Assembly (NCBI GenBank): GCA_977020255.1
Contig: CDROCS010000253.1
Location: 806,001-870,000, forward strand
Reading direction: 5' to 3'
Source of the DNA: Obrimoposthia wandeli
Taxonomy: Eukaryota
DNA length: 64,000 bases
Made by a program: the position numbers and the translations under genes. How positions within the stretch are numbered: position 1 is the first letter of the stretch; every line of letters starts with the position of its first letter. The notes beneath the pieces were generated by a model, which was given only the letters and a program-made list of their open reading frames with translations, was not told the DNA's origin and searched no databases. Positions 6,093 through 63,950 of the stretch are shown piece after piece.

Positions 6093-6254
6093 GCTTATCC
6101 TCATTGAATATGTAAGCTGATATAGGGTTTCTGTATCAGCTTTTATTTATAATAATTTCTTGTGGCGAAATTCTACGCCTATGCGTTGAATTTCGCCAAT
6201 AATAATTAGCAACTGCCGACTAAAGTCGGACTGTCTAACCACTTAACGTACAAT

Positions 6255-7904: not shown

Positions 7905-7918
7905 TTTTTTTCCTTATT

Positions 7919-7964
7919 TATACCCGTCACCTATCAAGATGTACTTTGAATAATAACGGGTATA
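7919..7964. repeat. 46-bp miniature ERIC-like/MITE element
   Basis: TATACCCGT...ACGGGTATA terminal inverted repeats, matching the ends of the 266-bp element at 15919. Confidence 0.7.
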
Positions 7965-7972
7965 GCCAATAA

Positions 7973-10654
7973 TTAAGCGTAAAGTGGGTTAAGTTTTTCA
8001 GTATCAATATCAAAGCGTTTGATTGCTTCGCTTACCACTGAACGTTTAACTTCACCACGATTTGCTAACTCAAATAATGCCGCAACAACAATATAAGCTG
8101 CGCTTACTTCGAAGTGAGTACGTAAGTTTGCACGACTATCACTACGACCAAAACCATCAGTACCTAAACAACGGTATTCAGTATCAATGTACGCACGTAC
8201 TTGATCAGAGTAGTTTTTGATGTAATCAGTTGCTGCAATGGCAGGTCCTGCATCTTTAGTAATAATTTGCGCAATGTAAGGTACACGCTGCTCACTTTCT
8301 GGATGAAGCATGTTCCAACGAGTTACGTCTTGACCGTCACGACCTAATTCATTAAATGAAGTTACTGAGTAAACATCACTTGAAATGTTGAACTCATTGG
8401 CAAGAATTTGTGCCGCTTCACGTACTTTTTCTAAAATAGTACCTGAACCTAATAATTGAACATTAGCAGTTGCCTTACCTTTAGCAGGTGCAGCTTGTTC
8501 AAGTTGATAAATACCTTTAATTATTTCTTCTTCAACTGTTTTACTTTCTGGCATTGCTGGATGTTGATAGTTTTCATTCATTAACGTTAAGTAGAAGAAT
8601 ACATTTTCATTTTCTTCATACATGCGACGTAAACCTTCACGTACGATAACTGCAATTTCATAACCGTAAGTTGGATCATAAGTCACACAGTTAGGGATCA
8701 AACCAGCTTGAACGTGTGAGTGACCATCTTGATGTTGAAGACCTTCACCGTTAAGTGTTGTTCTACCAGCAGTAGCACCTAATAAGAAACCACGAGCTTG
8801 GCTATCGCCAGCTGCCCATGCTAAGTCACCAACACGTTGGAAACCAAACATTGAGTAATAAATGTAGAATGGAATCGTTACCGCATTACAAGTAGAGTAA
8901 GACGTACCAGCAGCGACCCAAGACGCCATAGCACCTAACTCGTTAATACCTTCTTGTAAAACTTGGCCTTGTTTATCTTCACGGTAATAAGCAACTTGGT
9001 CAGCATCTTGTGGAACATATTTCTGACCTTCGCTTGCGTAAATACCGACTTGGCGGAATAAACCTTCCATACCAAAAGTACGTGCTTCATCTGGAATAAT
9101 CGGTACGATACGCTTACCAATTTTTTTATCTTTTAATAAACTATTAAGTACACGTACAAAGGTCATTGTTGATGAGACTTGACGCTCACCTGAGCCTTTT
9201 AAAATAGGTTCAAAGATTTTAAGCGCTGGAATTTCAAGTTGTTCTTCCGCTTGCACACGACGTGCTGGCAATGAACCACCTAATGCTTCACGGCGGGCTT
9301 TCATGTACTTGAATTCTTCGCTGTCTTCTGGGAATTTGTAGAACGGTAAATCAGCAATGTCATCATCGCTTACTGGAATATTGAAACGATCACGGTAATG
9401 TTTAATTGCCTCAACGTCCATTTTCTTAACGTTATGGGCAATGTTTAATGCTTCACCTGAAGCGCCTAAACCGAAACCTTTAACTGTTTTAGCTAAGATT
9501 ACTGTTGGACGACCTTTAGTGTTTTTCGCTTTTTCATAAGCCGCATAAACTTTAACTGGATCATGACCACCACGGTTTAAACGCCAGATATCTTCATCTG
9601 ACATGTTAGCAACCATGGCCTTCGTTTCAGGGTACTTGTTAAAGAAGTTTTCGCGTGTGTACTTACCGCCTTTCGCTTTACAGTTTTGGTATTCGCCATC
9701 CACTGTTTCGTTCATTAACTGTAGTAATTTACCTGAAGTATCACGAGCAATCAGTGAATCCCAGTAAGAACCCCAAATAACTTTCACTACTTCCCAGCCT
9801 GCGCCACGGAATGTACCTTCAAGCTCTTGGATTATTTTGCCGTTGCCACGTACCGGGCCATCTAAACGCTGTAAGTTACAGTTAACAATAAACGTTAAGT
9901 TATCTAAACCTTCACGTGAGGCTAAACCGATTGCACCTAATGATTCTGGCTCATCAGTTTCACCGTCACCTAGGAAACAATAAACACGTTGGCCTGAACA
10001 ATCTTTAATGCCACGGTCAGTTAAGTACTTTAAGAAACGTGCAGTATAGATAGCTTGTAATGGACCTAAGCCCATAGAAACTGTTGGGAACTGCCAGAAA
10101 TCTTTCATCAAATGAGGATGTGGGTATGAAGATAAACCTTTGCCGTCACACTCTTGACGGAAGTTATTCATTTGTTCTTCAGTTAAACGACCTTCCATAA
10201 AGGCACGAGAATAAATACCTGGAGAAATATGACCTTGAGCGAAAATAAAATCGCCACCGTCTTGTTCTGATGCCGCTTTAAAGAAGTGGTTAAAACCTAC
10301 GTCATATAAAGTAGATGAAGAAGCAAAGCTACCAATATGACCGCCAAGCTCTAAATCTTTTTTAGAGGCACGTAATACTAATACTAAAGCATTCCAACGA
10401 ATTGCAGAACGGATTCGTGATTCAATAGTTTGATCCGCAGGCATGTTTGGCTCTTGACCTGGTGGGATAGTATTTACATAAGCAGTCGTTGCATCAAATG
10501 GTAAATGAGTACCACCACGACGAGCGCGTTCAATTAACGTTTCTAATAATTGATGTGCGCGCTCTGGGCCTTCATTTTCTAATACTGACTCCATTGATTC
10601 TAACCACTCTTGGGTTTCTGCTGAATCAATATCGATATTTGGTAGATCTGACAT
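7973..10654 (-). CDS. aceE: Pyruvate dehydrogenase E1 (homodimeric type)
   Basis: GDGETDEPES ThDP motif, VNCNLQRLDGPVRGNGKI, DGFGRSDSRANLR. Confidence 0.98.
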   Translation of the reverse strand: MSDLPNIDIDSAETQEWLESMESVLENEGPERAHQLLETLIERARRGGTHLPFDATTAYVNTIPPGQEPNMPADQTIESRIRSAIRWNALVLVLRASKKDLELGGHIGSFASSSTLYDVGFNHFFKAASEQDGGDFIFAQGHISPGIYSRAFMEGRLTEEQMNNFRQECDGKGLSSYPHPHLMKDFWQFPTVSMGLGPLQAIYTARFLKYLTDRGIKDCSGQRVYCFLGDGETDEPESLGAIGLASREGLDNLTFIVNCNLQRLDGPVRGNGKIIQELEGTFRGAGWEVVKVIWGSYWDSLIARDTSGKLLQLMNETVDGEYQNCKAKGGKYTRENFFNKYPETKAMVANMSDEDIWRLNRGGHDPVKVYAAYEKAKNTKGRPTVILAKTVKGFGLGASGEALNIAHNVKKMDVEAIKHYRDRFNIPVSDDDIADLPFYKFPEDSEEFKYMKARREALGGSLPARRVQAEEQLEIPALKIFEPILKGSGERQVSSTMTFVRVLNSLLKDKKIGKRIVPIIPDEARTFGMEGLFRQVGIYASEGQKYVPQDADQVAYYREDKQGQVLQEGINELGAMASWVAAGTSYSTCNAVTIPFYIYYSMFGFQRVGDLAWAAGDSQARGFLLGATAGRTTLNGEGLQHQDGHSHVQAGLIPNCVTYDPTYGYEIAVIVREGLRRMYEENENVFFYLTLMNENYQHPAMPESKTVEEEIIKGIYQLEQAAPAKGKATANVQLLGSGTILEKVREAAQILANEFNISSDVYSVTSFNELGRDGQDVTRWNMLHPESEQRVPYIAQIITKDAGPAIAATDYIKNYSDQVRAYIDTEYRCLGTDGFGRSDSRANLRTHFEVSAAYIVVAALFELANRGEVKRSVVSEAIKRFDIDTEKLNPLYA

Positions 10655-20460: not shown

Positions 20461-21714
20461 ATGCCACAATTTTTCAAAAGACCTAGCCAAATACAAGCGA
20501 TTATTGCTTTGCGTAGCATTGCTATCGCCATTCAATTACTGTTAATTCTCTTTGTCAATTTGGGCTTAGCATACCAGTTACCTTGGACGCCATTGGTAAG
20601 CGTTATTAGCTTAGAAATACTTTTTACGCTCAGCAGCTATCTTTATTATCGCCACAATCATTTAAGTGAAAAGAAAGCGAGCCAAAAAGCAATATTGGTA
20701 CAAATATGTGCTGATATTATTTTCCTTTCTCTACTACTCTTTTTTAGTGGTGGGGCAACCAATGCTTTTGTTTCTTTATTGCTCATTCCTATCGCAATAG
20801 CCGCGGTCACTTTAACGCCATTACTACTTACCGTTGTTGCCTTCCTTGCCATCGCCTCTTACAGCATTCTATTATGGTCATTACCCATGAGTGTAATGCA
20901 CGGTAATATGCAGGGCCACTTTATTGGTATGGGTATCAACTTTTTATTTTCAGCACTCGTGGTTGCTATTGTCGTTGGTAAGATGGCACGTAGTATTAAT
21001 CAACAAGAACTTGCTATTGCGGCCTATCGTGAAAATTTATTAAAACAAGAGCAAGTGACTTCATTAGGTGTTGCTTCCGCTCAAGTAACCCACCAATTAG
21101 CGACTCCTATTGCAACAGTACAACTGCTGGCTGATGAATTAAGTGAAGATTTACCTGACAACGAAATTGTCCAGGATATGCAAGGCCAGCTTACTCGTTG
21201 TCGAGACAGTTTATCTGAATTTCGTGCGATGGTTTTCGATATAAAAGAACAGGTGATTAAAGCTATTAATTGCCAAGATTTATTCGATGAAATAACCGAT
21301 AATGTCCGAGTAAATAATCCAGAAATAAGTTTGCAGTTATTAAAAAACAATGACGAAAGTACCAAAGACGTCACTATTAATGCTGATGCGGCTTTGTTAC
21401 CTGCCATTCTTAATTTAATTAATAATGCGATTAGAGCAAGTAAAGCCAATAACAGTAAGTCGCTTAGCCTCACGGGGAAAATTATTGAGCATAACTGGCA
21501 ATTTACTATTCGTGATTATGGTAAAGGATTTACCTTAAAAAAATTAAATGAATTAGGCGTAAAACCTGTTAATAGTGAGCAAGGTTTTGGCATGGCCGTT
21601 TTTTTAAGTCACGCTAGTTTAGAGCGCCTTGGCGGAAAGTTAGCCTTAACAAACCACCAAGAGGGTGGTGCACTGGTCACTTTAAGCCTACCTATTTCAT
21701 CTCAGAAAATATAA
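20461..21714 (+). CDS. RegB/PrrB-type sensor histidine kinase
   Basis: TM region with GGATNAF (cf. GGxxNPF), H-box THQLATP, RCR redox Cys, N/G boxes. Confidence 0.85.
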   Translation: MPQFFKRPSQIQAIIALRSIAIAIQLLLILFVNLGLAYQLPWTPLVSVISLEILFTLSSYLYYRHNHLSEKKASQKAILVQICADIIFLSLLLFFSGGATNAFVSLLLIPIAIAAVTLTPLLLTVVAFLAIASYSILLWSLPMSVMHGNMQGHFIGMGINFLFSALVVAIVVGKMARSINQQELAIAAYRENLLKQEQVTSLGVASAQVTHQLATPIATVQLLADELSEDLPDNEIVQDMQGQLTRCRDSLSEFRAMVFDIKEQVIKAINCQDLFDEITDNVRVNNPEISLQLLKNNDESTKDVTINADAALLPAILNLINNAIRASKANNSKSLSLTGKIIEHNWQFTIRDYGKGFTLKKLNELGVKPVNSEQGFGMAVFLSHASLERLGGKLALTNHQEGGALVTLSLPISSQKI

Positions 21715-21732
21715 AGCATTAACAATAAGGAA

Positions 21733-22299
21733 ATGAGTATGCCTAATTCAGCAATACCTTCGATGTTACCAAAATTATTAATCGTTGAAGATGATATTAT
21801 TTTTGCCAACACCCTTAATAGACGTTTGACTAAACACGGCTTTGATTGTGTGCAAGTGGATAATAACAATGATGCGTTACTCGCATGTCATCGCCACACA
21901 CCCGATTATATTTTGCTAGATATGAAGTTGGCAGAGGAAAACACCTTATCAATCATCACGCCATTACGTAAATTACGCCCACAAAGCCGCATTGTATTAC
22001 TTACCGGTTTTGCTAGCATTGCCACCGCGGTTGACGCGATAAAATTAGGTGCGGATGATTATTTGTCTAAACCCGTGGATAGCCAAACACTGCTCGCGAC
22101 GCTTAAAGGTAGTAAAGCTGAAACCATAGCAGTCGATACTCAAAGCGAACAAACCTTATCTGCGGAGCAAGTGGAATGGCAACATATCCAACAAGTATTG
22201 AAAGCTAACCAGGGGAATATTTCGGCTACTGCTAGACAGCTTTCAATGCACAGAAGAACATTACAACGTAAGTTACAAAAGCGACCTCAACCAGCTTAA
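21733..22299 (+). CDS. RegA/PrrA-type response regulator
   Basis: Receiver domain plus EWQHIQQVLKANQGNISATARQLSMHRRTLQRKL Fis-type HTH. Confidence 0.9.
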   Translation: MSMPNSAIPSMLPKLLIVEDDIIFANTLNRRLTKHGFDCVQVDNNNDALLACHRHTPDYILLDMKLAEENTLSIITPLRKLRPQSRIVLLTGFASIATAVDAIKLGADDYLSKPVDSQTLLATLKGSKAETIAVDTQSEQTLSAEQVEWQHIQQVLKANQGNISATARQLSMHRRTLQRKLQKRPQPA

Positions 22300-51815: not shown

Positions 51816-52388
51816 TCAGGTAGCGTAATAAAAAACAAATCCTGCTGGGGTCACTAAGCCAGCAATAACCAGCCAACTCCGCTTTCCCAAGGCACTATAT
51901 CTCCCCTTAACCATAAACAATGCCGATATCGATAGAAATATCAGCATCAAGGCATACAAGTCAGAAAAATAAACCCATGCATTTTTTGCTTCATTTAAAT
52001 GCAAAAAATTTAGACTTCGAAGTAATGGTCTAGCTTTTATCTGCTCAACAAATACAGTATTCAGAGCAATATTGATAACAACAGTGCCGTTTTCGGTAAA
52101 AAGTTTATAGGTCTTAGGATTTTGCCAAAAGCGAGCTTTGACTTTAGCCTGTAGATTAATTTCTTTTAGTAACCAAGTTTCAAAATTATCACTTTCAATC
52201 TTAGTAGCCAGAGCCGTTATTTCATAAGTTTGCTGACTAACCGAGTAATTAGAGTTCCAATCATTAATATGGTTTAAGGCAATACCAGAAATAGCAAAAA
52301 CTAACGTCATGCCAATGCAAAAAAAACCAATATCCCGATGCAGAGTACGATTCAACCTAAACCAAAAAACTTGTCGTTTGTTAGTCAA
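51816..52388 (-). CDS. PepSY-associated TM helix protein (short form)
   Basis: LHRDIGFF...SGIALNH and LHL His-bearing TM segments. Confidence 0.8.
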   Translation of the reverse strand: MTNKRQVFWFRLNRTLHRDIGFFCIGMTLVFAISGIALNHINDWNSNYSVSQQTYEITALATKIESDNFETWLLKEINLQAKVKARFWQNPKTYKLFTENGTVVINIALNTVFVEQIKARPLLRSLNFLHLNEAKNAWVYFSDLYALMLIFLSISALFMVKGRYSALGKRSWLVIAGLVTPAGFVFYYAT

Positions 52389-52854
52389 TGATAGTCACTC
52401 CAGTCGGAGTGAATCGATATAGTGTCATTCCCTCCGTGACTAAAGATGAGTCGAATTCAACCTGGTTCTCTTTTGCACGATAGCTTAAATGCCTTTCAGC
52501 CTGTTTTCGACTCAATTTAATGGCAGCTAATGTTCCCGTGGCAAAGGCTTTCTTTCCCATAGTACTCATCGGAAATACCATTTCTCCATCGGGTACTTTT
52601 ATTGTGAGTATTTGATATTTCTTGTCTGAAGCGAGCTCCACCCAACAGCCCCTTTTTTTACACACTTTTACTATAGTGCCTGAAATAGTTGTCTTCACAG
52701 TCGTATAGTTTTCAGGTGTTGCTAACATTGTTGAAATACTAATCAACTTATCCATATTAGCACCAGGTCCAAACTTAATGGATTGAGCTTGTGTATAACT
52801 GGCTGTCAGTAAAAGTAGCACCATAAAACTCTCTTTAATCAGTGTTCTTCTCAT
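52381..52854 (-). CDS. DUF4920-like periplasmic protein
   Basis: Signal peptide; VCKKRGCW motif; overlaps the downstream gene by 8 nt. Confidence 0.75.
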   Translation of the reverse strand: MRRTLIKESFMVLLLLTASYTQAQSIKFGPGANMDKLISISTMLATPENYTTVKTTISGTIVKVCKKRGCWVELASDKKYQILTIKVPDGEMVFPMSTMGKKAFATGTLAAIKLSRKQAERHLSYRAKENQVEFDSSLVTEGMTLYRFTPTGVTIID

Positions 52855-53036
52855 TTATCCATCTCCTATGAAAGTAAATTAAATATATTTATACATTAAA
52901 TTACAATAAGTTAAGCTGCACCTTACTCGCTATAGAATGGTATATGTCACTTACAAAGCTGAACTTAGAACAAAATAAAATAACTTATTGCAAACAAATC
53001 TTAGATGATTTACTCTACTTTTTCAATAACCGTAAC

Positions 53037-53055
53037 GATAATTATTATCATTAAG
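53037..53055. promoter_or_regulatory. Fur box
   Basis: GATAATTATTATCATTAAG matches the consensus GATAATGATAATCATTATC at 15 of 19 positions. Confidence 0.75.
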
Positions 53056-53067
53056 ATAACATTAAAT

Positions 53068-55311
53068 ATGAAAATTAAAAAATCAATACTTTTTGTGGCT
53101 ATTATTACCGCCATTTATACTGGCCAAATCTCCGCAAAATCGGTGACTAAAGACCAAAATGAATTAGAAAAAATCGAAGTGTTTGGTCATAAAATAAGTC
53201 TATTAAATCAAGATGCTGCGGCGTCTATTTCCGTTTTAAATGAAAAAGAAATAGCACGTCAACAACAAGCAGAATTAACCAGTTTACTAAAACAATTACC
53301 TGGTGTTGATATCAATGGTGGCGTTACACCACTATCCGGTCAGCCAGTGATTAGGGGCCTATACGGTGAGCGAATTCACATTTCAGTGGATAACGTCAAA
53401 CGAAAAACCGAATCTGATGGTAGTAATAATATCGCCAGTATCAATAGCTTAGGTATAGACCCAGGACAGTTAAAACAGATACAGGTATTGCGTGGTGCCG
53501 ACTCATTAACTGTAGGTTCAGGCGCGGTAGGTGGTAGTATTCGCTTAGTAACCAAAGATGCCAAAGACTACTTAGCAGATAAAAATGGTATCGGCGCTCG
53601 TGTAGATGGCCTACACCAATCCGTCTCAGATTCTAATAAATTTGGTCTGTCATTATTTAATTTAACTGACAATCTAGATACAGTTTTTCATGCTAGTCAG
53701 GTCAAATTTTCAGATATTGATGTGGTCGCTAAAAGCGAAAATGATTTTGATACGCCCGATGATGTAGAAGAAGTAGCACTACTTGATAAAATAAAGAATG
53801 AATCAACCCGCACCAACCTGACCCTGAAAAACACTTGGTATTTTGCGCCCATGCACAGCATACAAAGCAAAGTAGACTGGAGCGAAACCAAGTCACTAGA
53901 TCAACCTTATGGTCAGCGTCAATCACTGGCTATTGCTTATCCAACCTTAGCCGAAGACTATAGTAACGATTATATTGAAGCTATGGCTAATTACGCCTAC
54001 CAGCCAGAAAGTCCGTTAATTGATCTGGATGTTCAACTGGTTTATTCAAAAAAAGATTACCAGAAAGAAACCCGAGGCTATATTGAGCGACGTGGTAATA
54101 AAATGAGTTTCGATAAACTCAGCGAAGGCTCAACCAAGCGTACCAGTTTACGCCTTGCTAACTTGTCTAAGTTTGAAGGCACAATAGATCACCGTTTGGC
54201 CATTGAATTTCATTATGAAACGGAAAACTTTACCCAATCTGAATTTAAAGATGATAAAACTAGCACTTATTACGGCGATAGCGACTCTGAAAACCTATCA
54301 TTGTCTTTGATTGACCAAGCAGAATTTTTTGATGGCCGCATTCTCGCAACGGGTGGATTTCGCTACGATACTTACAAGCGCAGCAACAATATTTTCACCC
54401 ATTATAACAATAATAACGATGGCGAGTTATCAAACGAACTCGGCTTAACTTTTAAAGCAACAGAGTATCTGAATTTTTACCTAAAATACGCCGAAGCATT
54501 TAGAGCGCCCTCCGTTCAAGAGTTATATAAAAAAGATGAGTGGCGCTGCCATATTGGTGGAAAAATTTGTTACAGTGAACCGCAACCTGACTTAAAACCA
54601 GAAACATCAACGAACTACGAAGCTGGCTTTGGTCTGGCCTGGCAAGACACTAGTTTCGCTGATCAACTGAGTGTTAAAGCGATTTACTTCAATAACAAGA
54701 TTGATAATTACATCGATAATGTTCCCTTTATGTATTACATCGATAAAAATGGTAACAAGCTACAAGGCTCGCCAGGTCCCAAGCCTGCCAATGATATTCC
54801 CGTTGCAACGCATCGTGATTACAGTGCCAAAAACATCGGTCTGTTGATCAGCACAGGCATAGAAATTGAAATGACTTATCAACTCGGAAAATTTGACGCC
54901 TACCTTGGCTATTCAGCAATGAATATGGATGTTGAAGGCATGCCCAATTTCTTTCTCGGCAGCATAGACTACCAGACGCAGCCTTACACGGAAGCACCCG
55001 CAGATAAACTGGCCTTAAATTTGAATTACCAACTGTTTGAAAGTTTCAATATTGGTGGTCAGGTATTAGCCTATGCTGAACAAAAGCGCTTGCCACAACA
55101 ATACCTTGATGCCGGATATGGTACCGACTCCTATCAAGTCTATAATTTCAATGCGAGCTATTACGGCAATGGTAGTTTATCTGGAGTAGGCATAGTGTTT
55201 GGTATTGATAACATCACCAATGAAAGATATCTACGTGCTCCAGCAAGTGAAGCCAATGATCCCGCAGAGCTAGGTCGTAACTATAAAGTCACCGTCAGTT
55301 ATCAATTTTAA
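53068..55311 (+). CDS. TonB-dependent receptor, heme/hemoglobin-receptor type
   Basis: Signal peptide, plug (LPGV, IRG, IQVLRG...GAVGG), FRAP motif, C-terminal GRNYKVTVSYQF. Confidence 0.88.
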   Translation: MKIKKSILFVAIITAIYTGQISAKSVTKDQNELEKIEVFGHKISLLNQDAAASISVLNEKEIARQQQAELTSLLKQLPGVDINGGVTPLSGQPVIRGLYGERIHISVDNVKRKTESDGSNNIASINSLGIDPGQLKQIQVLRGADSLTVGSGAVGGSIRLVTKDAKDYLADKNGIGARVDGLHQSVSDSNKFGLSLFNLTDNLDTVFHASQVKFSDIDVVAKSENDFDTPDDVEEVALLDKIKNESTRTNLTLKNTWYFAPMHSIQSKVDWSETKSLDQPYGQRQSLAIAYPTLAEDYSNDYIEAMANYAYQPESPLIDLDVQLVYSKKDYQKETRGYIERRGNKMSFDKLSEGSTKRTSLRLANLSKFEGTIDHRLAIEFHYETENFTQSEFKDDKTSTYYGDSDSENLSLSLIDQAEFFDGRILATGGFRYDTYKRSNNIFTHYNNNNDGELSNELGLTFKATEYLNFYLKYAEAFRAPSVQELYKKDEWRCHIGGKICYSEPQPDLKPETSTNYEAGFGLAWQDTSFADQLSVKAIYFNNKIDNYIDNVPFMYYIDKNGNKLQGSPGPKPANDIPVATHRDYSAKNIGLLISTGIEIEMTYQLGKFDAYLGYSAMNMDVEGMPNFFLGSIDYQTQPYTEAPADKLALNLNYQLFESFNIGGQVLAYAEQKRLPQQYLDAGYGTDSYQVYNFNASYYGNGSLSGVGIVFGIDNITNERYLRAPASEANDPAELGRNYKVTVSYQF

Positions 55312-55601
55312 AGAAAACTGATATAAGTTTAAGTTTATAAAGCAGTTGAGCCTCATCGCTCTACTGCTTTACTTATTACTATTGAGTGGCTATTGCTGCA
55401 TCAATTTTATTCAACGACAGTAAAAAATTCCTAATCTACCGATAGCGAATAGAAAAGAAGACGCATATCAAATTATTGCTATGTTCTTTTCAATGATGCT
55501 AGAATTAAAAGAATTATTATTGCCTAGCTATTTTGTTAAGTTATTAACTAACGAATAACTAACGAATAACTAGCTAATAATCCCTAGCTACTAATCATTA
55601 A

Positions 55602-56036
55602 GTGCTGCTTGTGCCTACTTTTATAAATAAAACAATAATGGTGATATTGCTTTGTTTGATCTTTATCGGTCAATCAATGGCATCTATGACTATGTTTTAT
55701 CGCATGACAAATATGCAATCTATGACTGGAATGTCATCGATAAAAAGTTCGCATCGTACTATGGAAAAAATAGACAATTCGACTCATCACATGAGTAATA
55801 TGTCTGATTGCGATGAAGAAGCGATGACGCAAACACCTTGCACTACTAAGTCTACACAAGATTGCTGTGCGCAAGAGTGTGATTGTTTAACAAGTGGCTG
55901 CTCAACCGTATCAGCATTTTCAATCATTATTAATTACACCCCTGTATTTGCTACTCCCAGTAAGATCAATTCACCCAATGCGTTAGCCGCTAGTCAAACA
56001 CTTACCTCCCTTTATAGACCGCCCATACTGAGCTAA
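55602..56036 (+). CDS. Cys/His/Met-rich exported protein upstream of the efflux operon (CopL/DUF2946-like leader)
   Basis: Hydrophobic N-terminus, HHMSNM, CCAQECDCLTSGC, C-terminal SLYRPPILS. Confidence 0.7.
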   Translation: MLLVPTFINKTIMVILLCLIFIGQSMASMTMFYRMTNMQSMTGMSSIKSSHRTMEKIDNSTHHMSNMSDCDEEAMTQTPCTTKSTQDCCAQECDCLTSGCSTVSAFSIIINYTPVFATPSKINSPNALAASQTLTSLYRPPILS

Positions 56037-56207
56037 TCACTGCCTCATTGCGTCTAAATTTTGCTGTTTTATTCTTATCATAGATAATTTAAAACACTCG
56101 ATGCTGCAAAAATTATCACGTTACTTATTAATTTAGCATTCATAAATTTATAGTGACTTCACCAAAAAAACATTCATTTCCGTAAAATATTCCCTCAGGA
56201 GGGAGTT

Positions 56208-57614
56208 ATGTTTTCATTTTCTTTTCCAGCTAACGCGATCGTAATTATTGTCAGTGCTATAACATTAAACGGGTTATTGGCTTTTAGCCCTGCTCTTGAA
56301 GCTGCTGACCATCAAAAGGGCTGGTCGTTTAATAACACCGTCATCACAGCCCAAAAAAATGACCCTTGGCTCACGGGCAATAAACATCAACAACAAGCCG
56401 TTAAGGCTATGAGCCATGCTGCCTCGAGTTTGCCTGATCCTAAAATGTCAGTAGCACTAGCAAACCTACCCACCGATGGTTTTGATTTCTCGCAAGAAGC
56501 TATGACACAACTCAAGGTGGGTATTACCCAGATGTTCCCCCGTGGGGATACCCTGACAATAAAAAATCAGCAACTGCGTATTCAAAGTGAAGCCTATCCC
56601 TTTCAACGTGCCGATAGAAAGGCCAAAGTTGCAGTTACTGTTGGTACTTTATGGCTCGATGCTTATCGGGTGCAACAAAGTATTGCGCTAATAGAACAAA
56701 ATCGTTCCTTGTTCGAGCAATTAGCTGATGTTGCTCAAGCCAGTTATTCTTCAACATTAGGTAAAACACGCCAACAAGATATTGTGCGCGCACAGCTTGA
56801 ATTAACCCGACTCGATGATCGGCTAGACATACTGGCGCAACAGCAAAATGCCTATTTGGGTATGTTGGCGCAATGGCTGTCAACGGCCTTTGCGGTAAAT
56901 AGCCAACAAGGTGCTATCCGCGCGATAAGCCAGCTGCACAACATCCAATTAGCTACAGAGTTGCCGCAACTTGATTTACTCAATAATGAGCTTGTCTATA
57001 GTAAGATCGCGGGATCTGTTGAGGTGCTAGCTAAGCACTTTGCCAATCACCCAGCCATATTTGCTCTCGATAAAAAAATATCTGCCAGCAAAACGGGTAT
57101 TAACTTAGCCGAGCAGCAATACCAACCCGAATGGGGAGTTAATGCCAGTTATGGTTATCGAGATGATGACCCTATGGGTAGAAGTCGTTCAGATTTCTTC
57201 TCTGTTGGTGTTACGTTCGACCTGCCACTGTTTACTGAAAACCGTCAAGATATGGCAGTAAAATCTGCCATATCAACAACGGAAGCCGTTAAAACCGAAA
57301 AAATACTATTATTACGTCAACTACTCGGAGCCTTCTCAAGTGCCAAAGGCCGCTTATTGCGATTAGAACAGCGAAAATTACTCTATAAAACGCGACTGTT
57401 ACCACAAGTTAATGATCAAGCAGAAGCGTCATTAACCGCGTACACCAATGATGATGGTGACTTTGCTGAAGTAGTACGTTCACGCATTGCCGTACTCAAT
57501 GCCCAAATTGACGATTTAGTCATTCAGGTGGCAGAGCAAAAACTTATTCTAGAATTAAATTACTTATTTGTTGGCTCGTTAAATACGGGCAATCAAATAG
57601 CAGGAGAAAAATAA
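56208..57614 (+). CDS. TolC-family outer-membrane factor (CusC-like)
   Basis: SLPDPKM, QQDIVRAQLEL, PEWGVNASYGYR; AGGAGG RBS. Confidence 0.85.
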   Translation: MFSFSFPANAIVIIVSAITLNGLLAFSPALEAADHQKGWSFNNTVITAQKNDPWLTGNKHQQQAVKAMSHAASSLPDPKMSVALANLPTDGFDFSQEAMTQLKVGITQMFPRGDTLTIKNQQLRIQSEAYPFQRADRKAKVAVTVGTLWLDAYRVQQSIALIEQNRSLFEQLADVAQASYSSTLGKTRQQDIVRAQLELTRLDDRLDILAQQQNAYLGMLAQWLSTAFAVNSQQGAIRAISQLHNIQLATELPQLDLLNNELVYSKIAGSVEVLAKHFANHPAIFALDKKISASKTGINLAEQQYQPEWGVNASYGYRDDDPMGRSRSDFFSVGVTFDLPLFTENRQDMAVKSAISTTEAVKTEKILLLRQLLGAFSSAKGRLLRLEQRKLLYKTRLLPQVNDQAEASLTAYTNDDGDFAEVVRSRIAVLNAQIDDLVIQVAEQKLILELNYLFVGSLNTGNQIAGEK

Positions 57615-59362
57615 TGACAGCAACTAAATCCTCAACCTTAAAAGCTAGTCTATTTGGCTTAATTATTGGCTCAGTTGTTACCTTTATTGGTTACACCCTA
57701 CTGACTCCTAAACATGAAATAACTAACACAAATAATAGCGCCAGTAGTGAAAATAAACCGCTCTATTGGGTTGCCCCTATGGATGCTAATTATCGTCGCG
57801 ATAAAGCCGGTAAATCGCCTATGGGCATGGATTTAATACCCTATTATGGTGGTGATGGATCGGGACCAGATGAAGGTGTTGGCACTATTCGGATTTCAGC
57901 GAATGTCATCAATAATCTAGGCGTTCGTACCGTTAATGCCGAAGTTAAAACACTGCATACGCGAATAGATACCGTAGGTTATGTCACCTATGATCAAGAT
58001 AGATTAGTACATATTCACCCTAGGGTAGAAGGCTGGGTAGAAAAGCTTTATGTTAAAGCGATTGGCGATCCAGTAAAAAAAGGCCAACCACTGTACAATA
58101 TTTATTCTCCTGAACTAGTTAATGCCCAAGAGGAGTTTTTACTTGCGCTAGACAGAAAAAACCGTCGATTAATTACCGCATCAGAAAACCGCTTAGTAGC
58201 GCTACAATTACCCAGATCAGTTATTAGCAACCTTAAAAAGAACCGTAAGGTGCAACAAAACATTGCCTTTTTTGCACCACAAAATGGCGTTATAGAAAAC
58301 CTGAAAATACGTGAAGGATTTTTTGTTAAACCTGGCTCAACTTTAATGTCTATTGGCGATTTATCACAAGTTTGGGTTGAAGCAGAAGTGTTTGAACGCC
58401 AAGCAAGCCAAGTAGAGCAAGGCACACCTGTCACCATGAGCCTAGACTATTTACCGGGAAAAACCTGGCAGGGCAAGATAGATTACGTTTATCCCATCTT
58501 AGATGCTAAGACCCGCACGGTAAAAGTAAGATTGCGCTTTAACAATGAAAATGGTGAGTTTAAACCTAACATGTTTGCACAAATCACCATTCATACGAGC
58601 AGTGATGAAAAAGCATTATTAATTCCCAAAGAGGCACTAATTCGCACCGGTAATCACGATCGGGTGGTATTAGCATTAGGCGAAGGAAATTTTAAATCCG
58701 TCACGGTGAGTGTTGGTCGTTTTGATAGTGATAATGTTGAAATATTATCAGGTCTGAATGCAGGAGAAAAAGTGGTTAGCTCGGCGCAATTTTTACTCGA
58801 CTCTGAATCAAGTAAAACCTCTGATTTTAAACGTATGAGCCATGACAATGTACCCAGCACGGTATGGGTCAACGCCAGCATAATTAGCCTAATGGCAGAG
58901 CACAAAATGCTGACTTTAGCTCATGATGTCATCCCTGCCTGGGACTGGCCAGAAATGACTATGGACTTCATCGCTTTAGACTCAATAGACTTTTCTCAAC
59001 TAACAGAAAATATGACTATTCGTGTTGAAATTGAAAAAGCCAGCGACAACGATTATCGCATAATAAACGTTGAGCCAAACGGAGACAAAACCGTCAGCAG
59101 TGCCACAGTAAATGGTACCGTAGCCTCTGTTATGCCGCCTCATCGCATGGTCACAATTCACCGTGAAGCTATTGAAAAATGGGATAGAGAAGCAGCTACC
59201 GTTGATTTCATTGTTGCTGAAAGTGTTGATATGACACTATTTACTGTCGGTGCTTATTTGATGTTTACCTTCGAAATTAAAGAGGGTGAATTTCGAATTA
59301 TTAGCGCGATGACAATGAAAAAAGACAGCTCTTCACATGATATACCACAGGGAGATAAGTAA
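57614..59362 (+). CDS. cusB: CusB-like periplasmic adaptor with two C-terminal CusF-like domains
   Basis: YWVAPMD...KSPMGMDLIP metal-binding segment, membrane-fusion core, HDVIPAWDWPEMTMDF. Confidence 0.85.
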   Translation: MTATKSSTLKASLFGLIIGSVVTFIGYTLLTPKHEITNTNNSASSENKPLYWVAPMDANYRRDKAGKSPMGMDLIPYYGGDGSGPDEGVGTIRISANVINNLGVRTVNAEVKTLHTRIDTVGYVTYDQDRLVHIHPRVEGWVEKLYVKAIGDPVKKGQPLYNIYSPELVNAQEEFLLALDRKNRRLITASENRLVALQLPRSVISNLKKNRKVQQNIAFFAPQNGVIENLKIREGFFVKPGSTLMSIGDLSQVWVEAEVFERQASQVEQGTPVTMSLDYLPGKTWQGKIDYVYPILDAKTRTVKVRLRFNNENGEFKPNMFAQITIHTSSDEKALLIPKEALIRTGNHDRVVLALGEGNFKSVTVSVGRFDSDNVEILSGLNAGEKVVSSAQFLLDSESSKTSDFKRMSHDNVPSTVWVNASIISLMAEHKMLTLAHDVIPAWDWPEMTMDFIALDSIDFSQLTENMTIRVEIEKASDNDYRIINVEPNGDKTVSSATVNGTVASVMPPHRMVTIHREAIEKWDREAATVDFIVAESVDMTLFTVGAYLMFTFEIKEGEFRIISAMTMKKDSSSHDIPQGDK

Positions 59363-62300
59363 TGATTACTGCCATTATTCGCTGGTCAGTAGGCAATCGC
59401 TTCTTTGTCATTTTGGCCACCATGATCTTAGTTGGTGTTGGTTTATATTCAGTCAAAAACACCCCCGTTGATGCCCTACCCGATTTATCTGATGTGCAAG
59501 TTATCATCAAAACTAGCTACCCAGGCCAAGCGCCACAAGTCGTTGAAGATCAAGTCACTTATCCGCTAACCACTGCTATGTTATCAGTCCCTGGCGCGGT
59601 AACCGTACGTGGTTATTCCTTTTTTGGCGACTCTTACGTTTATGTTATTTTCGACGAAGACACTGACCTTTACTGGGCACGTTCTCGCGTTTTAGAGTAC
59701 TTAAGCCAAGTATCTCCCAGTTTACCCAACGAAGCTAGGCCACAACTAGGGCCTGATGCGACAGGTGTTGGTTGGGTATATCTTTATGCCTTAATCGACA
59801 AAACGGGGCAGCACGATTTAAGCCAATTACGAAGCTTACAAGATTGGTTTTTAAAGTATGAACTACAAACGGTCAAAGGCGTTTCAGAGGTTACCGCACT
59901 CGGTGGCATGGTTAAGCAATACCAAGTACAAATTGATCCCGATAAATTACGCGCTTTTGGCATTCCTTTATCTCTGATTCAAACAGCAATCAAACAGGGT
60001 AACCAAGAAATTGGTGCCTCTGTAGTGGAAATGGCCGAAGCCGAATATATGGTGCGCGCCACCGGCTATATTAAAAGTGTTGATGATCTTGAAAATATTC
60101 CCCTTGGTGTCAATCAAAATGGCACGCCATTGTTACTTAAGGATGTTGCAGAAATAGGCACAGGGCCACAAATGCGCCGTGGTATCGCCGAACTTAATGG
60201 TGAAGGTGAAACCGTTGGTGGTATTGTAGTGATGCGCTTTGGTGAAAATGCTCAACAGGTTATTAATGGTGTAAAGGCGAAACTCGAACAGTTGAAAAAA
60301 GGTTTACCTGAAGGTGTAGAGATTGTACCTGTTTATGACAGATCGGCATTAATAGAGCGTGCTGTCAGCAACTTGGCGATAAAGCTGTTAGAAGAGTTTG
60401 CTGTCGTTGCTTTAGTATGTGTTATTTTTCTCTTTCATTTACGCTCCTCTTTAGTGGTGATCATTAGTATTCCTGTCGGTATTTTAACGGCATTTATCGT
60501 GATGCATGCCCAAGGTTTAAATGCCAATATCATGTCACTTGGTGGTATTGCAATTGCTATTGGCGCTATGGTTGATGGCGCTATTGTCATGATTGAAAAC
60601 ATGCACAAACACATGGAGAAGACGCCGTTAACCGATGAAAATCGATGGCAAATAGTTACTGATGCCGCCTGTGAAGTTGGACCTGCACTATTTTTTAGTT
60701 TGCTGATTATCACGGTAAGTTTTGTCCCTGTATTCACCCTTGAAGCGCAAGAAGGACGGATGTTTTCACCACTGGCTTACACCAAAACTTATGCGATGGC
60801 GGCAGCGGCAGCTTTAGCTATTACCTTAGTGCCAGTTTTAATGGGGTATTTTATTCGTGGTAAAGTACTGGCTGAACATAAAAATCCGGTAAATAAGTTT
60901 TTGACTGCGTTATACCTACCTGCGCTAAAAGCAGTATTACGTTTCCCTAAAGTGACCTTATCTGCCGCGGTTGTTGTGCTTCTTATTGGTTTATATCCAT
61001 TAGATAAAATTGGTAGTGAATTCATTCCTCCCCTTGATGAGGGTGACTTAATGTATATGCCAACCACTTACCCAGGAATATCTATCGGCCAAGCCAGACA
61101 GTTGTTACAACAAACCGACAAGCTAATTAAAACCGTACCTGAAGTTAAAACCGTTTTTGGTAAAGTGGGTCGTGCGGAAACGGCAACCGATCCTGCGCCG
61201 TTAACCATGATAGAAACCTTTATCCAGTTGAAACCAAAAAGTGAATGGCGTGAAGGTGTCACTACCGCCAGTTTGAAAAAAGAATTAGATGCTTTAGTCA
61301 AACTGCCTGGCGTTACCAATGCTTGGGTTATGCCAATAAAAACGCGAATTGACATGCTAGCAACGGGTATCAAAACCCCGGTAGGTATCAAAATAGCGGG
61401 ACCTAAACTTGAAACTATTCAAGAAATTGGTCAGCAGCTGGAAGTGATTTTAGCCGATGTACCCGGCACAGCTTCGGTGTATTCTGAGCGAGTTGCTGGT
61501 GGTCGTTACATCAAAGTTGATATTCAACGCGGTAAAGCCGCTCGTTATGGCTTAAACATCAGTGATATTCAGCAAGTAGTCGCGACGGCTATTGGCGGCA
61601 TGAATGTTACCAATACCGTTGAAGGCTTAGAGCGATATCCGGTCAATTTACGCTATCCGCAAGATTATCGAAACTCCCCTGAGCAGTTGTCACTATTACC
61701 CATAGTAACGCCTAATGGCCAGCGAATCTCCCTTGGTGATGTTGCCCATATATTTATTGAAGATGGTCCTCCAGGTATCAAATCAGAAAATGCCCGCTTA
61801 AATGGCTGGGCTTTTATAGATATCGAAGGTGTCGATGTTGGTACTTATGTTGAAACAGCACAGCAGGTAGTTGATGATCAACTAACATTGCCTGCAGGCT
61901 ATTCTATTGCTTGGGCAGGTCAATATGAATACATGCAACGCGCAAAAGCTAAATTGACTTATGTTGTCCCCTTAACCTTAGCAATCATTATTGTCTTACT
62001 GTATTTAAACTTTCGCAATGTTATTGAAGTTGCCATGATTTTAGGTACACTTCCGCTCGCTATGGTAGGTAGTATTTGGTTAATGTATTTACAAGGTTTC
62101 AATTTCTCTGTCGCAGTCGGCGTTGGTTTCATTGCCCTTGCTGGTGTTGCTGTAGAAATTGGCGTTATTATGTTAGTTTACTTGAATCAAGCATATCATG
62201 CGGTATTGGCCGATAATGCCGTACAAGGAAAGGCGACAACTAAAGCTGATATTTTACAGGCAGTCCTCCATGGCGCAGGCTTGAGAGTAAGACCAGTTAT

Positions 62301-62493
62301 GATGACCGGAGGCACGGTTATTGTTGGTTTATTACCAATATTATATGGCACAGGCACGGGTTCAGAAGTGATGAGTCGAATTGCTGCTCCTATGGTTGGT
62401 GGTATGGCGAGTGCCATGTTATTAACCTTGCTCGTTTTACCCGCGCTCTATTATTTATGGCGCTCTGCTGGCCTACAAAAAATTAATGAGTAA
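59362..62493 (+). CDS. cusA: CusA/SilA heavy-metal RND transporter
   Basis: DALPDLSDVQV, AIGAMVD; Met sites GDLMYMP, PLTMIET and RIDMLATG, as in Cu/Ag-specific CusA. Confidence 0.93.
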   Translation: MITAIIRWSVGNRFFVILATMILVGVGLYSVKNTPVDALPDLSDVQVIIKTSYPGQAPQVVEDQVTYPLTTAMLSVPGAVTVRGYSFFGDSYVYVIFDEDTDLYWARSRVLEYLSQVSPSLPNEARPQLGPDATGVGWVYLYALIDKTGQHDLSQLRSLQDWFLKYELQTVKGVSEVTALGGMVKQYQVQIDPDKLRAFGIPLSLIQTAIKQGNQEIGASVVEMAEAEYMVRATGYIKSVDDLENIPLGVNQNGTPLLLKDVAEIGTGPQMRRGIAELNGEGETVGGIVVMRFGENAQQVINGVKAKLEQLKKGLPEGVEIVPVYDRSALIERAVSNLAIKLLEEFAVVALVCVIFLFHLRSSLVVIISIPVGILTAFIVMHAQGLNANIMSLGGIAIAIGAMVDGAIVMIENMHKHMEKTPLTDENRWQIVTDAACEVGPALFFSLLIITVSFVPVFTLEAQEGRMFSPLAYTKTYAMAAAAALAITLVPVLMGYFIRGKVLAEHKNPVNKFLTALYLPALKAVLRFPKVTLSAAVVVLLIGLYPLDKIGSEFIPPLDEGDLMYMPTTYPGISIGQARQLLQQTDKLIKTVPEVKTVFGKVGRAETATDPAPLTMIETFIQLKPKSEWREGVTTASLKKELDALVKLPGVTNAWVMPIKTRIDMLATGIKTPVGIKIAGPKLETIQEIGQQLEVILADVPGTASVYSERVAGGRYIKVDIQRGKAARYGLNISDIQQVVATAIGGMNVTNTVEGLERYPVNLRYPQDYRNSPEQLSLLPIVTPNGQRISLGDVAHIFIEDGPPGIKSENARLNGWAFIDIEGVDVGTYVETAQQVVDDQLTLPAGYSIAWAGQYEYMQRAKAKLTYVVPLTLAIIIVLLYLNFRNVIEVAMILGTLPLAMVGSIWLMYLQGFNFSVAVGVGFIALAGVAVEIGVIMLVYLNQAYHAVLADNAVQGKATTKADILQAVLHGAGLRVRPVMMTGGTVIVGLLPILYGTGTGSEVMSRIAAPMVGGMASAMLLTLLVLPALYYLWRSAGLQKINE

Positions 62494-63410: not shown

Positions 63411-63950
63411 TTATTTTTTTAATCCAACAATGGCATAGTCACCACCAACGGTAAGTTTAACCACGACCGGTTTATCTGATGTGTTTTTCCAATACCAACC
63501 ATGAATACCAGTAAATGGTGTAGTAAAACTACCTTTCATTTCTGTTAACGTCGCAATAGCATAACTTTCATAATAACCTGTGGTATCACCTTCTGGCTCA
63601 CCGTGTAAATCAAAGAAAAGTGCAGTGCCGTCGGTTTGCCATTGATATTCCATTTTCTTAAACTGCGTCATAGCAAATTTATACTCGACACCACGCCCAG
63701 CGGGTACAACAACTTCAATAATATCGACTGCATGTTGGTTTGCTGTGTTGAGGTCTTCACTTTGTGCTGTGTTTATTGTCGCAGTAGCCACTGGATTTGC
63801 TAAAGCTGTTAAACCGAGCTTAGCGCCAATACCTGTTGGGTCGATATTATATTCTGCAGGTAATATAAAGCTAATAAGTACTAAACCAGCAATCACCAAA
63901 GCAATGATGGTTGATTTGAGTAAGGCTTTATTTGATAAGGTATGTTGCAT
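63411..63950 (-). CDS. Membrane-anchored hypothetical protein with conserved His/Trp motifs
   Basis: N-terminal TM, LPAEYNIDPTGIG, FDLHGE, GIHGWYWKN. Confidence 0.75.
   Translation of the reverse strand: MQHTLSNKALLKSTIIALVIAGLVLISFILPAEYNIDPTGIGAKLGLTALANPVATATINTAQSEDLNTANQHAVDIIEVVVPAGRGVEYKFAMTQFKKMEYQWQTDGTALFFDLHGEPEGDTTGYYESYAIATLTEMKGSFTTPFTGIHGWYWKNTSDKPVVVKLTVGGDYAIVGLKK

Follow-up and report, generated by a model that had tools for sequence, protein, structure and literature searches.

The 64-kb stretch of DNA analysed here (contig CDROCS010000253.1 of the Obrimoposthia wandeli assembly, hereafter the window) carries a short open reading frame (ORF) upstream of a cusCBA operon for a copper/silver efflux pump of the resistance-nodulation-division (RND) type. 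This ORF belongs to the known CopL/CutF-like family of exported leader peptides rich in cysteines, and we conclude, with a probability of roughly 0.65, that its product acts in cis as a metal-responsive leader. The initial annotation of the stretch had reported a signal-like N-terminus, the motif HHMSNM, a Cys cluster, the C-terminus SLYRPPILS and a gap of 171 nucleotides (nt) to cusC, and all of these features are indeed present where it had placed them. The leader is made up of the following parts:

55602-56036, + strand: leader ORF, CopL-family / CutF-like by profile match and homologues; 144 amino acids (aa) from GTG 55602, probably 141 aa from GTG 55611.
55611-55682, + strand: predicted Sec signal peptide, with a Lys-containing n-region, a hydrophobic core, and SMA followed by S.
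55683-55808, + strand: Met/His-rich segment (residues 28-69), poorly conserved, with Y33 and M35 invariant and M38 nearly so in the alignment.
55863-55901, + strand: Cys cluster CCx3CxCx4C (C88, C89, C93, C95, C100), which consists of invariant or near-invariant columns and includes a CxxxC.
55902-56015, + strand: 38-residue spacer between the Cys cluster and RPP, variable in sequence and fixed in length; it forms the 5' part of the C>G bubble described below.
56016-56024, + strand: putative arrest site R139-P140-P141, followed by I-L-S (56025-56033) and the stop codon (56034-56036).

The second of the two GTG codons (55611, protein MPTF...) is probably the true start of the leader, because it is the start in homologues and is replaced by ATG in one relative. 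The hydrophobic N-terminus (...IMVILLCLIFIGQSMA, then S) ends in GQSMA before the S, and residues L17, L19, F21, Q24 and S25 of the signal-peptide region are conserved in the homologue alignment. The n-h-c layout with SMA before S was read from the sequence alone, and an AlphaFold2 model places a helix at residues 6-28. HHMSNM corresponds to residues 62-67, cysteines occupy positions 70, 80, 88, 89, 93, 95 and 100, and the two prolines of SLYRPPILS are residues 140-141 of 144. The AlphaFold2 model was built on an alignment of 26 sequences only, which makes it weak as evidence. Its mean predicted local distance difference test (pLDDT) score is 48.9, the helix is its sole confident part, and pLDDT stays below 50 over residues 42-136; past the signal helix the leader is thus predicted to be disordered. 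A folded chaperone as the leader product was rejected on this model, which, with the limit given by its small alignment, contains no fold beyond the signal helix.

In the NCBIfam collection, the leader matched NF033807 (CopL family metal-binding regulatory protein) with a borderline score of 40.3 bits at a cut-off of 40 (E = 4.3e-10), its residues 14-142 aligning with positions 6-128 of the 129 in the model. The same model was matched by all 26 aligned relatives, with a best E of 4.5e-13. A Pfam scan of the leader returned no match at E <= 1, PF11162 (DUF2946) included, and membership in DUF2946, which only 2 of the 26 relatives match (E = 0.048 or weaker), was rejected. A word-based search found 93 homologous proteins, and homologues were also found at 71 genomic loci and 5 plasmid loci; with this many relatives the ORF is far beyond chance. 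The closest proteins and loci come from Colwellia, and the DNA was on this ground taken to be that of a Colwellia. Pooling the protein homologues with the translated loci gave 149 distinct sequences. Because a pattern based on SLYRPPI had served to retrieve the 71 genome loci, motif conservation among them is circular; independent support for the motif comes from the word-based protein search and the tblastn plasmid matches.

The RPP and Cys residues, to which the initial annotation had drawn attention, proved to be the conserved columns. In the alignment from the 93-homologue search, Q24, Y33, M35, C88, C89, C95, I122 and the C-terminal S-L-x-R-P-P-I-x-S are invariant, and C93, C100, K121 and Y138 are at least 90% conserved. 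Outside the conserved columns identity drops to 40-50% in this alignment, with insertions and deletions in the Met/His-rich part, and to 25-45% in comparisons that extend to the plasmid homologues. CCx3CxCx4C is kept in 135 of the 149 homologues and also in the plasmid homologues, and the SLYRPPI core in 144 (KPP occurs in two relatives). The geometry around the motif is nearly fixed: 148 of the 149 sequences have exactly 3 residues between RPP and their end, and the last Cys and the Arg are 38 residues apart in 127 and 37-39 in 139. Plasmid homologues with 25-30% identity by tblastn end in SLFRPPIFA (Alteromonas macleodii), SLYRPPIFFVK (Shewanella baltica) and SLYKPPIFA (Pseudoalteromonas xiamenensis), and these three share the Cys cluster and the 38-residue spacer with the window leader. 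The codons of the tail vary synonymously (Arg as AGA, CGA, CGT or CGC; both Pro with all four codons; Leu, Ser and Tyr likewise), which indicates selection on the peptide. The motif was initially assigned to the RAPP/RAGP type, and this had to be abandoned because the core in the homologues is [R/K]-P-P-I, with no Ala or Gly between the R and PP.

Three genes for the pump components follow the leader:

56208-57614, + strand: cusC, outer-membrane efflux protein (PF02321; Pfam/NCBIfam match).
57614-59362, + strand: cusB, CusB-type adaptor with an N-terminal heavy-metal-binding (HMBD) motif and two C-terminal CusF-like stretches (PF11604).
59362-62493, + strand: cusA, an ORF of 1043 aa called from its size, position and homologue identity.

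The start and stop codons of cusC, cusB and cusA overlap. The leader stop ends at 56036 and the cusC ATG stands at 56208, which leaves the intergenic region of 171 nt; across the family, the distance from the leader to the next gene varies from 94 to 336 nt around a median of 153 nt. The cusA ORF is 74-97% identical to homologous ORFs at related loci, and plasmid records annotate a CusA/CzcA-family RND permease. With two CusF-like stretches at its C-terminus, CusB has a periplasmic chaperone fused to the adaptor.

The association with metal transport surmised by the initial annotation is general: a copper-resistance operon follows the leader, on the same strand, in nearly every locus examined. 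At 43 of the 71 loci the leader precedes a DUF411 gene and then cusCBA, at 23 it stands directly before cusC or cusB, and at 5, from Marinomonas, it precedes a multicopper oxidase with a twin-arginine translocation (Tat) signal. The gene order at the plasmid loci is the same as at the genome loci. Altogether, the leader family stands before five kinds of operon (cusCBA, DUF411-cusCBA, cusBA, copCD and multicopper oxidase). In the Marinomonas loci (L063-L070, ~6001-8600) the leader ends SSLYRPPILS and lies 211-216 nt before the Tat-signal multicopper oxidase, with a cusBA-like pair upstream; leader plus multicopper oxidase is the classical copL-copA arrangement. Several genomes carry two CopL-cus loci (e.g. 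L001/L025, L012/L040 and L034/L059). In Colwellia marinimaniae (L004, 2866-5376, - strand), a second leader of 127 aa that is divergent from the first ends TSLYRPPILS and heads copC and copD after an intergenic region of 311 nt.

The DUF411 gene is absent from the window, where CusC starts with MFSFSFPANA..., residues that in relatives form the N-terminus of the DUF411 protein (window 56208-56250; L004 6620-6700 and 7216-7300). An in-frame deletion has therefore fused the first ~10 codons of the DUF411 gene, together with everything upstream, to cusC, and both the hairpin upstream and the DUF411 start have been kept despite the loss of the gene. Psychrosphaera and Pseudocolwellia loci have a similar pattern, with MF.NK... 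joined to CusC. This suggests that repeated DUF411 deletions have been constrained to keep the 5' module.

The following elements lie in the DNA or transcript from the promoter to the start of cusC:

55476-55505, + strand: promoter-like site TTGCTA, 18-nt spacer, TG-n-TAGAAT (extended -10), found by consensus scan and an alignment of 13 upstream regions.
55549-55570, + strand: 11-nt unit (TAACGAATAAC) present as two tandem copies in a variable segment of the 5' untranslated region (5'UTR).
55901-56100, + strand: C>G bubble, a candidate Rho-utilisation (rut) region by base composition.
56004-56013, + strand: ACCUCCCUUU, similar to an anti-Shine-Dalgarno (anti-SD) sequence, in codons T135-Y138; RNAduplex energy with the cusC SD region -12.4 kcal/mol.
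56037-56072, + strand: block of ~35 nt that follows the stop and is conserved among members of the window's clade; homologous to the 5' half of the sister-clade terminator hairpin.
56189-56206, + strand: hairpin AUUCCCU-CAGG-AGGGAGU with the cusC SD in its 3' arm, -7.7 kcal/mol, followed by a U-rich start region and the AUG at 56208.

In the 165 nt from 55902 to 56066, which comprise the 3' end of the ORF and 30 nt of the intergenic region, the C fraction is 0.30 and the G fraction 0.12. Among 165-nt windows taken from both strands of the 64 kb, the difference of 0.176 ranks in the highest 0.04%. C exceeds G in all 78-nt sliding windows starting at 55901-56101, and the spacer region (55902-56015) has C at 0.29-0.33 versus G at 0.08-0.14. 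In the window's clade, which is the window plus L001-L016, the median C-G difference is 0.158, compared with 0.085 in the clade that bears a terminator. In this larger sister clade (Colwellia, Cognaticolwellia, Pseudocolwellia and Thalassotalea), 27 loci have a terminator hairpin of -10 to -19 kcal/mol. Its first nucleotide belongs to the last sense codon, 4-5 nt ahead of the stop codon's end, its last lies at about +58, and U5-7 comes immediately after. Its sequence is highly conserved, with little covariation. A Shewanella plasmid locus has a perfect hairpin from the stop codon onwards and then a U-rich tract. The block at 56037-56072 is possibly part of a rut site or a terminator remnant. 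The core GUCCAAAAUUUGG (window 56052-56066; L072 6366-6400) is conserved across clades although it is paired differently: in Colwellia its pairing is internal, and in Alteromonas it lies in the loop of a GUGCGU/ACGCAC hairpin, which hints at a constraint on its sequence rather than on its structure. A hairpin joining the Y-R-P codons to GCGUCUA (56015-56056, -7.7 kcal/mol) was rejected because it is broken without compensation in relatives with CGA or CCT codons. An Rfam scan of 55300-56400 gave no match at E <= 1.

From these sequences and from the precedents CruR and CutF, we infer stalling, metal sensing and export coupling. In the general mechanism, which we hold to be just as probable as the cis-acting role of the leader, metal-promoted stalling at RPP switches on cusCBA. 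The promoter at 55476-55505 would transcribe the leader, whose nascent chain would present the signal peptide, the Met/His-rich segment and CCx3CxCx4C. Cu(I) or Ag(I) bound to this chain would make the ribosome pause longer at the point where Pro140 occupies the P site and Pro141 the A site. The front of this ribosome would then extend to the last sense codon and the stop codon, and the ribosome with any others queued behind would cover the C-rich 3' third of the ORF. Covering this region would block termination downstream of the leader, which is probably Rho-dependent in the window's clade and intrinsic in the sister clades; in the latter, the stalled ribosome would remove the base of the terminator stem beside the U-tract and so allow read-through, and prompt release would let the terminator form. 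The paused ribosome would also mask the anti-SD-like codons (56004-56013) and thereby make the cusC ribosome-binding site usable. The operon would then be transcribed, with the SD hairpin and the distal anti-SD acting as a second, translational layer. When metal is lacking, fast peptide release would lead to transcription termination and the pump would stay off.

Metal would have to promote the arrest, because the controlled genes serve efflux and detoxification. The near-invariant 3 residues after RPP would be explained by the edge of the stalled ribosome meeting the start of the sister-clade stem. The 38-residue spacer is about one exit-tunnel length, so that an arrested chain would have its Cys cluster where the tunnel opens. 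With co-translational export, the Met/His-rich part would by then have crossed the membrane, lying as it does 70-110 residues from the peptidyl-transferase centre, and either of the two may be the metal sensor. The CruR-like C>G bubble together with the fixed geometry favours stalled-ribosome control of transcription termination, and as the specific mechanism in the window's clade we propose such termination control tentatively, at slightly less than even odds.

Several points weigh against this reading. While the ribosome is arrested, the cysteines of the cluster would lie in the tunnel exit or the translocon and not in the periplasm. RPP is a plain XPPX and not a robust RAPP or RGPP, so that EF-P may resolve the stall and a context-specific arrest has to be assumed. 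With 171 nt between leader and cusC, a stalled ribosome cannot melt the cusC hairpin directly. No canonical intrinsic terminator was found after the leader in the window's clade, and the putative Rho dependence is suggested by base composition alone. The pairing between leader codons and SD lacks covariation, and such complementarity is expected from C-rich Pro, Ser and Thr codons (CCN, UCN); the local hairpin could, moreover, still hide the SD when the distal anti-SD is covered. The polarity, in which metal promotes arrest, was chosen from the need to induce an efflux pump, and that of CruR is the opposite. Among RNA libraries, the match was one 247-nt contig from a relative (55527-55771), and the other runs, which are of unrecorded type and consist of contigs, are uninformative on expression.

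The alternative that survives best, which we nevertheless consider unlikely, is purely translational control of the CutF type. Read-through would be constant, the SD would be shut by the local hairpin and by codons 135-138, and a stall would remove the long-range partner and raise cusC initiation. An SD hairpin is in fact conserved before the first downstream gene in most loci, with arms that differ (UCCCU/AGGGA, UCUC/GAGA, CAUCC/GGGUG and UCGCUCU/GGAGUGA) and a median of -5.7 kcal/mol versus -0.75 for 40 control gene starts with SD-like motifs, a statistic that the relatedness of the loci inflates. The sequence ACCUCCCUUU is the best complement of the cusC SD in the entire 5' transcript, lies directly before the RPP codons and falls inside the footprint of a ribosome stalled there; the corresponding leader codons hold the best SD complement in 31 of 69 loci, and both the minimum-free-energy fold and the alifold consensus select this pairing. 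The stem-loop covering the SD in CutF provides a precedent (PMC9973294). However, the local arm can sequester the SD regardless of a distal partner, the pairing has the same lack of covariation and the same trivial origin in CCN and UCN codons as noted above, and purely translational control leaves both the stop-overlapping terminator of the sister clades and the C>G bubble unexplained. In addition, Ozturk et al. expect direct unfolding only at short intergenic regions. Direct CutF-type melting of the SD hairpin, which lies ~150 nt from the leader stop, was rejected because the distance is too great, here as in the family at large given the median intergenic length. The long-range pairing was likewise rejected as the primary element: it is physically plausible, has no covariation and is confounded by the C-rich codons, and was kept as secondary only.

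Control by a trans-acting regulator whose gene lies elsewhere in the genome (CusRS-, CopRS- or CueR-like), which would act at the promoter at 55476-55505 while the leader provides constant attenuation, seems improbable to us. The window covers 64 kb of the genome, CopRS has been suggested to control cus in C. metallidurans (PMC10304878), and a putative CopR-like motif lies before one silD start site (PMC7563307), all of which speak for such a regulator. The promoter, on the other hand, is near consensus, with its extended -10 and 18-nt spacer, and the window's clade has kept it; an alignment of 13 loci shows no such conservation further upstream, nor was a conserved dyad, operator or upstream activator box seen around the promoter. 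Judged by its sequence, it looks constitutive. In C. metallidurans, cusD is uninduced while cusCBAF is induced (PMC7563307, PMC10304878), which also argues against a trans-acting regulator. The initial annotation had stated that no metal regulator lies in the window, and this is correct for CusRS-type (OmpR-family) pairs and MerR/CueR-type regulators, none of which is encoded in the 64 kb or was seen beside the leader in those relatives whose flanks were inspected. Other regulators, however, are present: a PilS-like kinase with a response regulator carrying a Fis-type helix-turn-helix (HTH) domain (20461-22299), a GntR-type and a LysR-type regulator, all more than 14 kb away and none metal-like. 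The kinase has six transmembrane segments, and its partner consists of a receiver and the Fis-type HTH without a sigma-54 domain; they are the only two-component pair in the window, 33 kb from cus and without an evident metal link.

A separate promoter within the intergenic region, a possibility that had been raised initially, was not found: a consensus scan gave no sigma-70-like match in 56037-56207. It was rejected as a candidate on this result and because three relatives lack the middle of the region. With this, each of the computational checks put forward by the initial annotation had come out in its favour. The 5'UTR segment with the TAACGAATAAC repeat is shorter or absent in relatives, and one related contig from a public run has a single copy, with 11 nt fewer.

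A somewhat smaller chance still is given to the leader being a stand-alone exported periplasmic Cu/Ag buffer or pump chaperone with no role in cis, its C-terminus serving as a sorting, interaction or degradation tag. The signal peptide, the Met/His-rich and Cys-rich ligand motifs and the place in the operon would suit such a protein, and CusD has been read by its authors as a periplasmic copper-sequestering lipoprotein (PMC10304878). Yet the best-conserved part of the leader is not a fold but [R/K]PP with its 3 following residues at a fixed 38-aa spacer, and the AlphaFold2 model contains no folded domain. Long structured intergenic regions and a terminator that starts in the last codon would be unexpected if the leader were simply a first cistron, copper genes that are unrelated to one another follow the same leader, and CutF and CruR are undetectable as stable proteins (PMC9973294, PMC9426467). 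Finally, a polarity like that of CruR, in which the RPP arrest is constitutive, metal relieves it and the freed codons 135-138 pair with the SD arm to prevent a terminator-like SD hairpin and U-tract, is very improbable, for although the SD hairpin precedes a very U-rich start region and was flagged as terminator-like in three loci, the leader anti-SD could compete for the 3' arm and copper relieves the CruR arrest (PMC9426467), the stop-overlapping terminator of the sister clades needs stalling for read-through, the same peptide would answer metal oppositely in close relatives, and the long-range helix would hide the SD too.

Other genes around the operon may have a connection with copper. 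Directly upstream of the leader lies a gene for a TonB-dependent receptor (53005-55311; TIGR01785 with 309.9 bits, just below the cut-off), which is divergent from genes for a DUF4920 protein and a PepSY_TM-like protein (block 51816-55311). In Bordetella, the pairing of a TonB-dependent transporter with PepSY_TM constitutes a copper-uptake operon headed by CruR (PMC9426467, PMC12914433, PMC13038864). In the 71 related loci, none of the receptor, DUF4920 and PepSY_TM-like genes turned up within ~6 kb of the leader (two loci have a distant receptor of 23-30% identity), and the adjacency of receptor and leader looks specific to the window genome. On the other side, a 179-aa membrane-anchored protein without a family match is encoded at 63411-63950 (- strand). 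Homologues that are 57-63% identical lie upstream of the leader in six other genomes, at 1-2 kb in five of them (L018, L034, L040, L049 and L056) and at ~6 kb in L045, and the protein may be part of the copper locus.

Copper/silver RND pumps are under textbook two-component (CusRS) control. If our reading is true, sensing of metal by a leader on the ribosome would offer an alternative to CusRS that needs no regulator. The leader type appears widespread in marine gammaproteobacteria and their plasmids, and its ORFs, mostly annotated as "hypothetical protein", could be named CopL-family leaders. The locus and its relatives offer a compact test system, with a fixed peptide geometry, a constitutive-looking promoter and natural terminator and Rho-type variants; because the same peptide occurs with either a terminator or a Rho-type region behind it, transcriptional and translational read-outs are separable. 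For this clade, the analysis adds the geometry of 38 aa, RPP and 3 aa, the stop-overlapping terminator of the sister clades versus the Rho-type signature of the window's clade, the wide conservation of the SD hairpin, the occurrence of one leader before five kinds of copper operon, and the DUF411 deletions that spare the regulatory 5' end. The idea put forward in the initial annotation is essentially the published CutF/CruR concept and was thus already anticipated in print, the class having been put forward on bioinformatic grounds (PMC9973294); in the literature searched, we found no experimental test of any leader member before an RND pump. A bolder proposal, against which we would place the odds, is that the Alteromonadales CopL clade holds the first RND pump switched on by metal-induced nascent-chain arrest alone, without a protein regulator, with interchangeable read-outs (stop-overlapping intrinsic terminator, Rho-type C>G region and SD hairpin) and with the Cys cluster as a metal sensor at the tunnel exit, exactly one tunnel length (38 aa) from the peptidyl-transferase centre.

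Several known systems share parts of this arrangement. A ribosome arrested near the end of the TnaC leader blocks the access of Rho, and arrest in SecM remodels the downstream RNA; SecM is also exported, and its arrest is tuned by translocation. The peptides and ligands of TnaC and SecM are unrelated to those considered here, and the R-[A/G]-P-[P/G] core of the RAPP-like class (ApdA, ApdP, ApcA and SecM) is absent from the window leader. Closer in genomic position are CusD and SilD (cusDCBAF, silDCBA), which, compared by description, are small exported proteins rich in Cys, Met and His encoded directly before cusC or silC. The Cupriavidus metallidurans cusD gene is expressed without copper while cusCBAF is induced (PMC10304878, PMC7563307), which is the pattern expected of an attenuator. 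Unlike the window leader, CusD and SilD are described by the authors as Tat-exported lipoproteins and copper-sequestering chaperones.

CopL of the Xanthomonas and Stenotrophomonas copLAB operons is required in cis for copper-induced copA expression (PMC9973294). The window leader and 26 relatives match NF033807 over its full length, and this likeness was obtained through the family model and not through Xanthomonas sequences. The window leader differs in having an RND pump downstream, and its score is barely at the cut-off. CruR (Bp2923, DUF2946) of Bordetella pertussis has RAPP 3 residues from its C-terminus, a conserved CxxC-RAPP spacing and an intergenic region of 162 nt, and its C>G bubble accompanies Rho-dependent termination that a stalled ribosome prevents (PMC9426467); the arrest occurs with the first Pro in the P site (PMC12992588). 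The window leader resembles CruR in the strictly conserved spacing between Cys and motif (45 aa in CruR, 38 here), in the long intergenic region (162 and 171 nt) and in the C>G bubble, which covers the ORF's 3' part and runs into the intergenic region. It differs in its motifs, which are CCx3CxCx4C and RPP instead of CXXC and RAPP, and in lacking a DUF2946 match. CruR, moreover, heads a copper-repressed TonB-dependent uptake transporter, so that the opposite polarity is needed here.

The closest counterpart is CutF of Rhodobacter capsulatus, in which copper at a CxxxC induces stalling at the Pro-rich C-terminus and turns on cutO (PMC9973294; bioRxiv 10.1101/2025.02.05.636593). CopL, CusD and SilD have been placed in the CutF-like network (PMC9973294), and leaders of this kind before OEP/RND efflux genes are its commonest arrangement (Ozturk et al. 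2023, PMC9973294). The working definition of CutF-like proteins fits the window ORF in size, in PP near the C-terminus and in the copper-resistance gene downstream (PMC9973294). Like CutF, the leader is a small, probably exported protein with a CxxxC and with PP no more than 15 residues from the C-terminus, it is followed by a copper-resistance gene with the SD in a stem-loop, and copper would be expected to turn this gene on. The two differ in that CutF ends GPPPRL and needs EF-P whereas the window leader ends YRPPILS, and in that the SD hairpin here is out of the stalled ribosome's reach in an intergenic region of 171 nt, with terminator and rut-like elements that suggest transcriptional control. 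The window leader is thus a clean further example of the CopL/CutF-like family and not a new kind of system.

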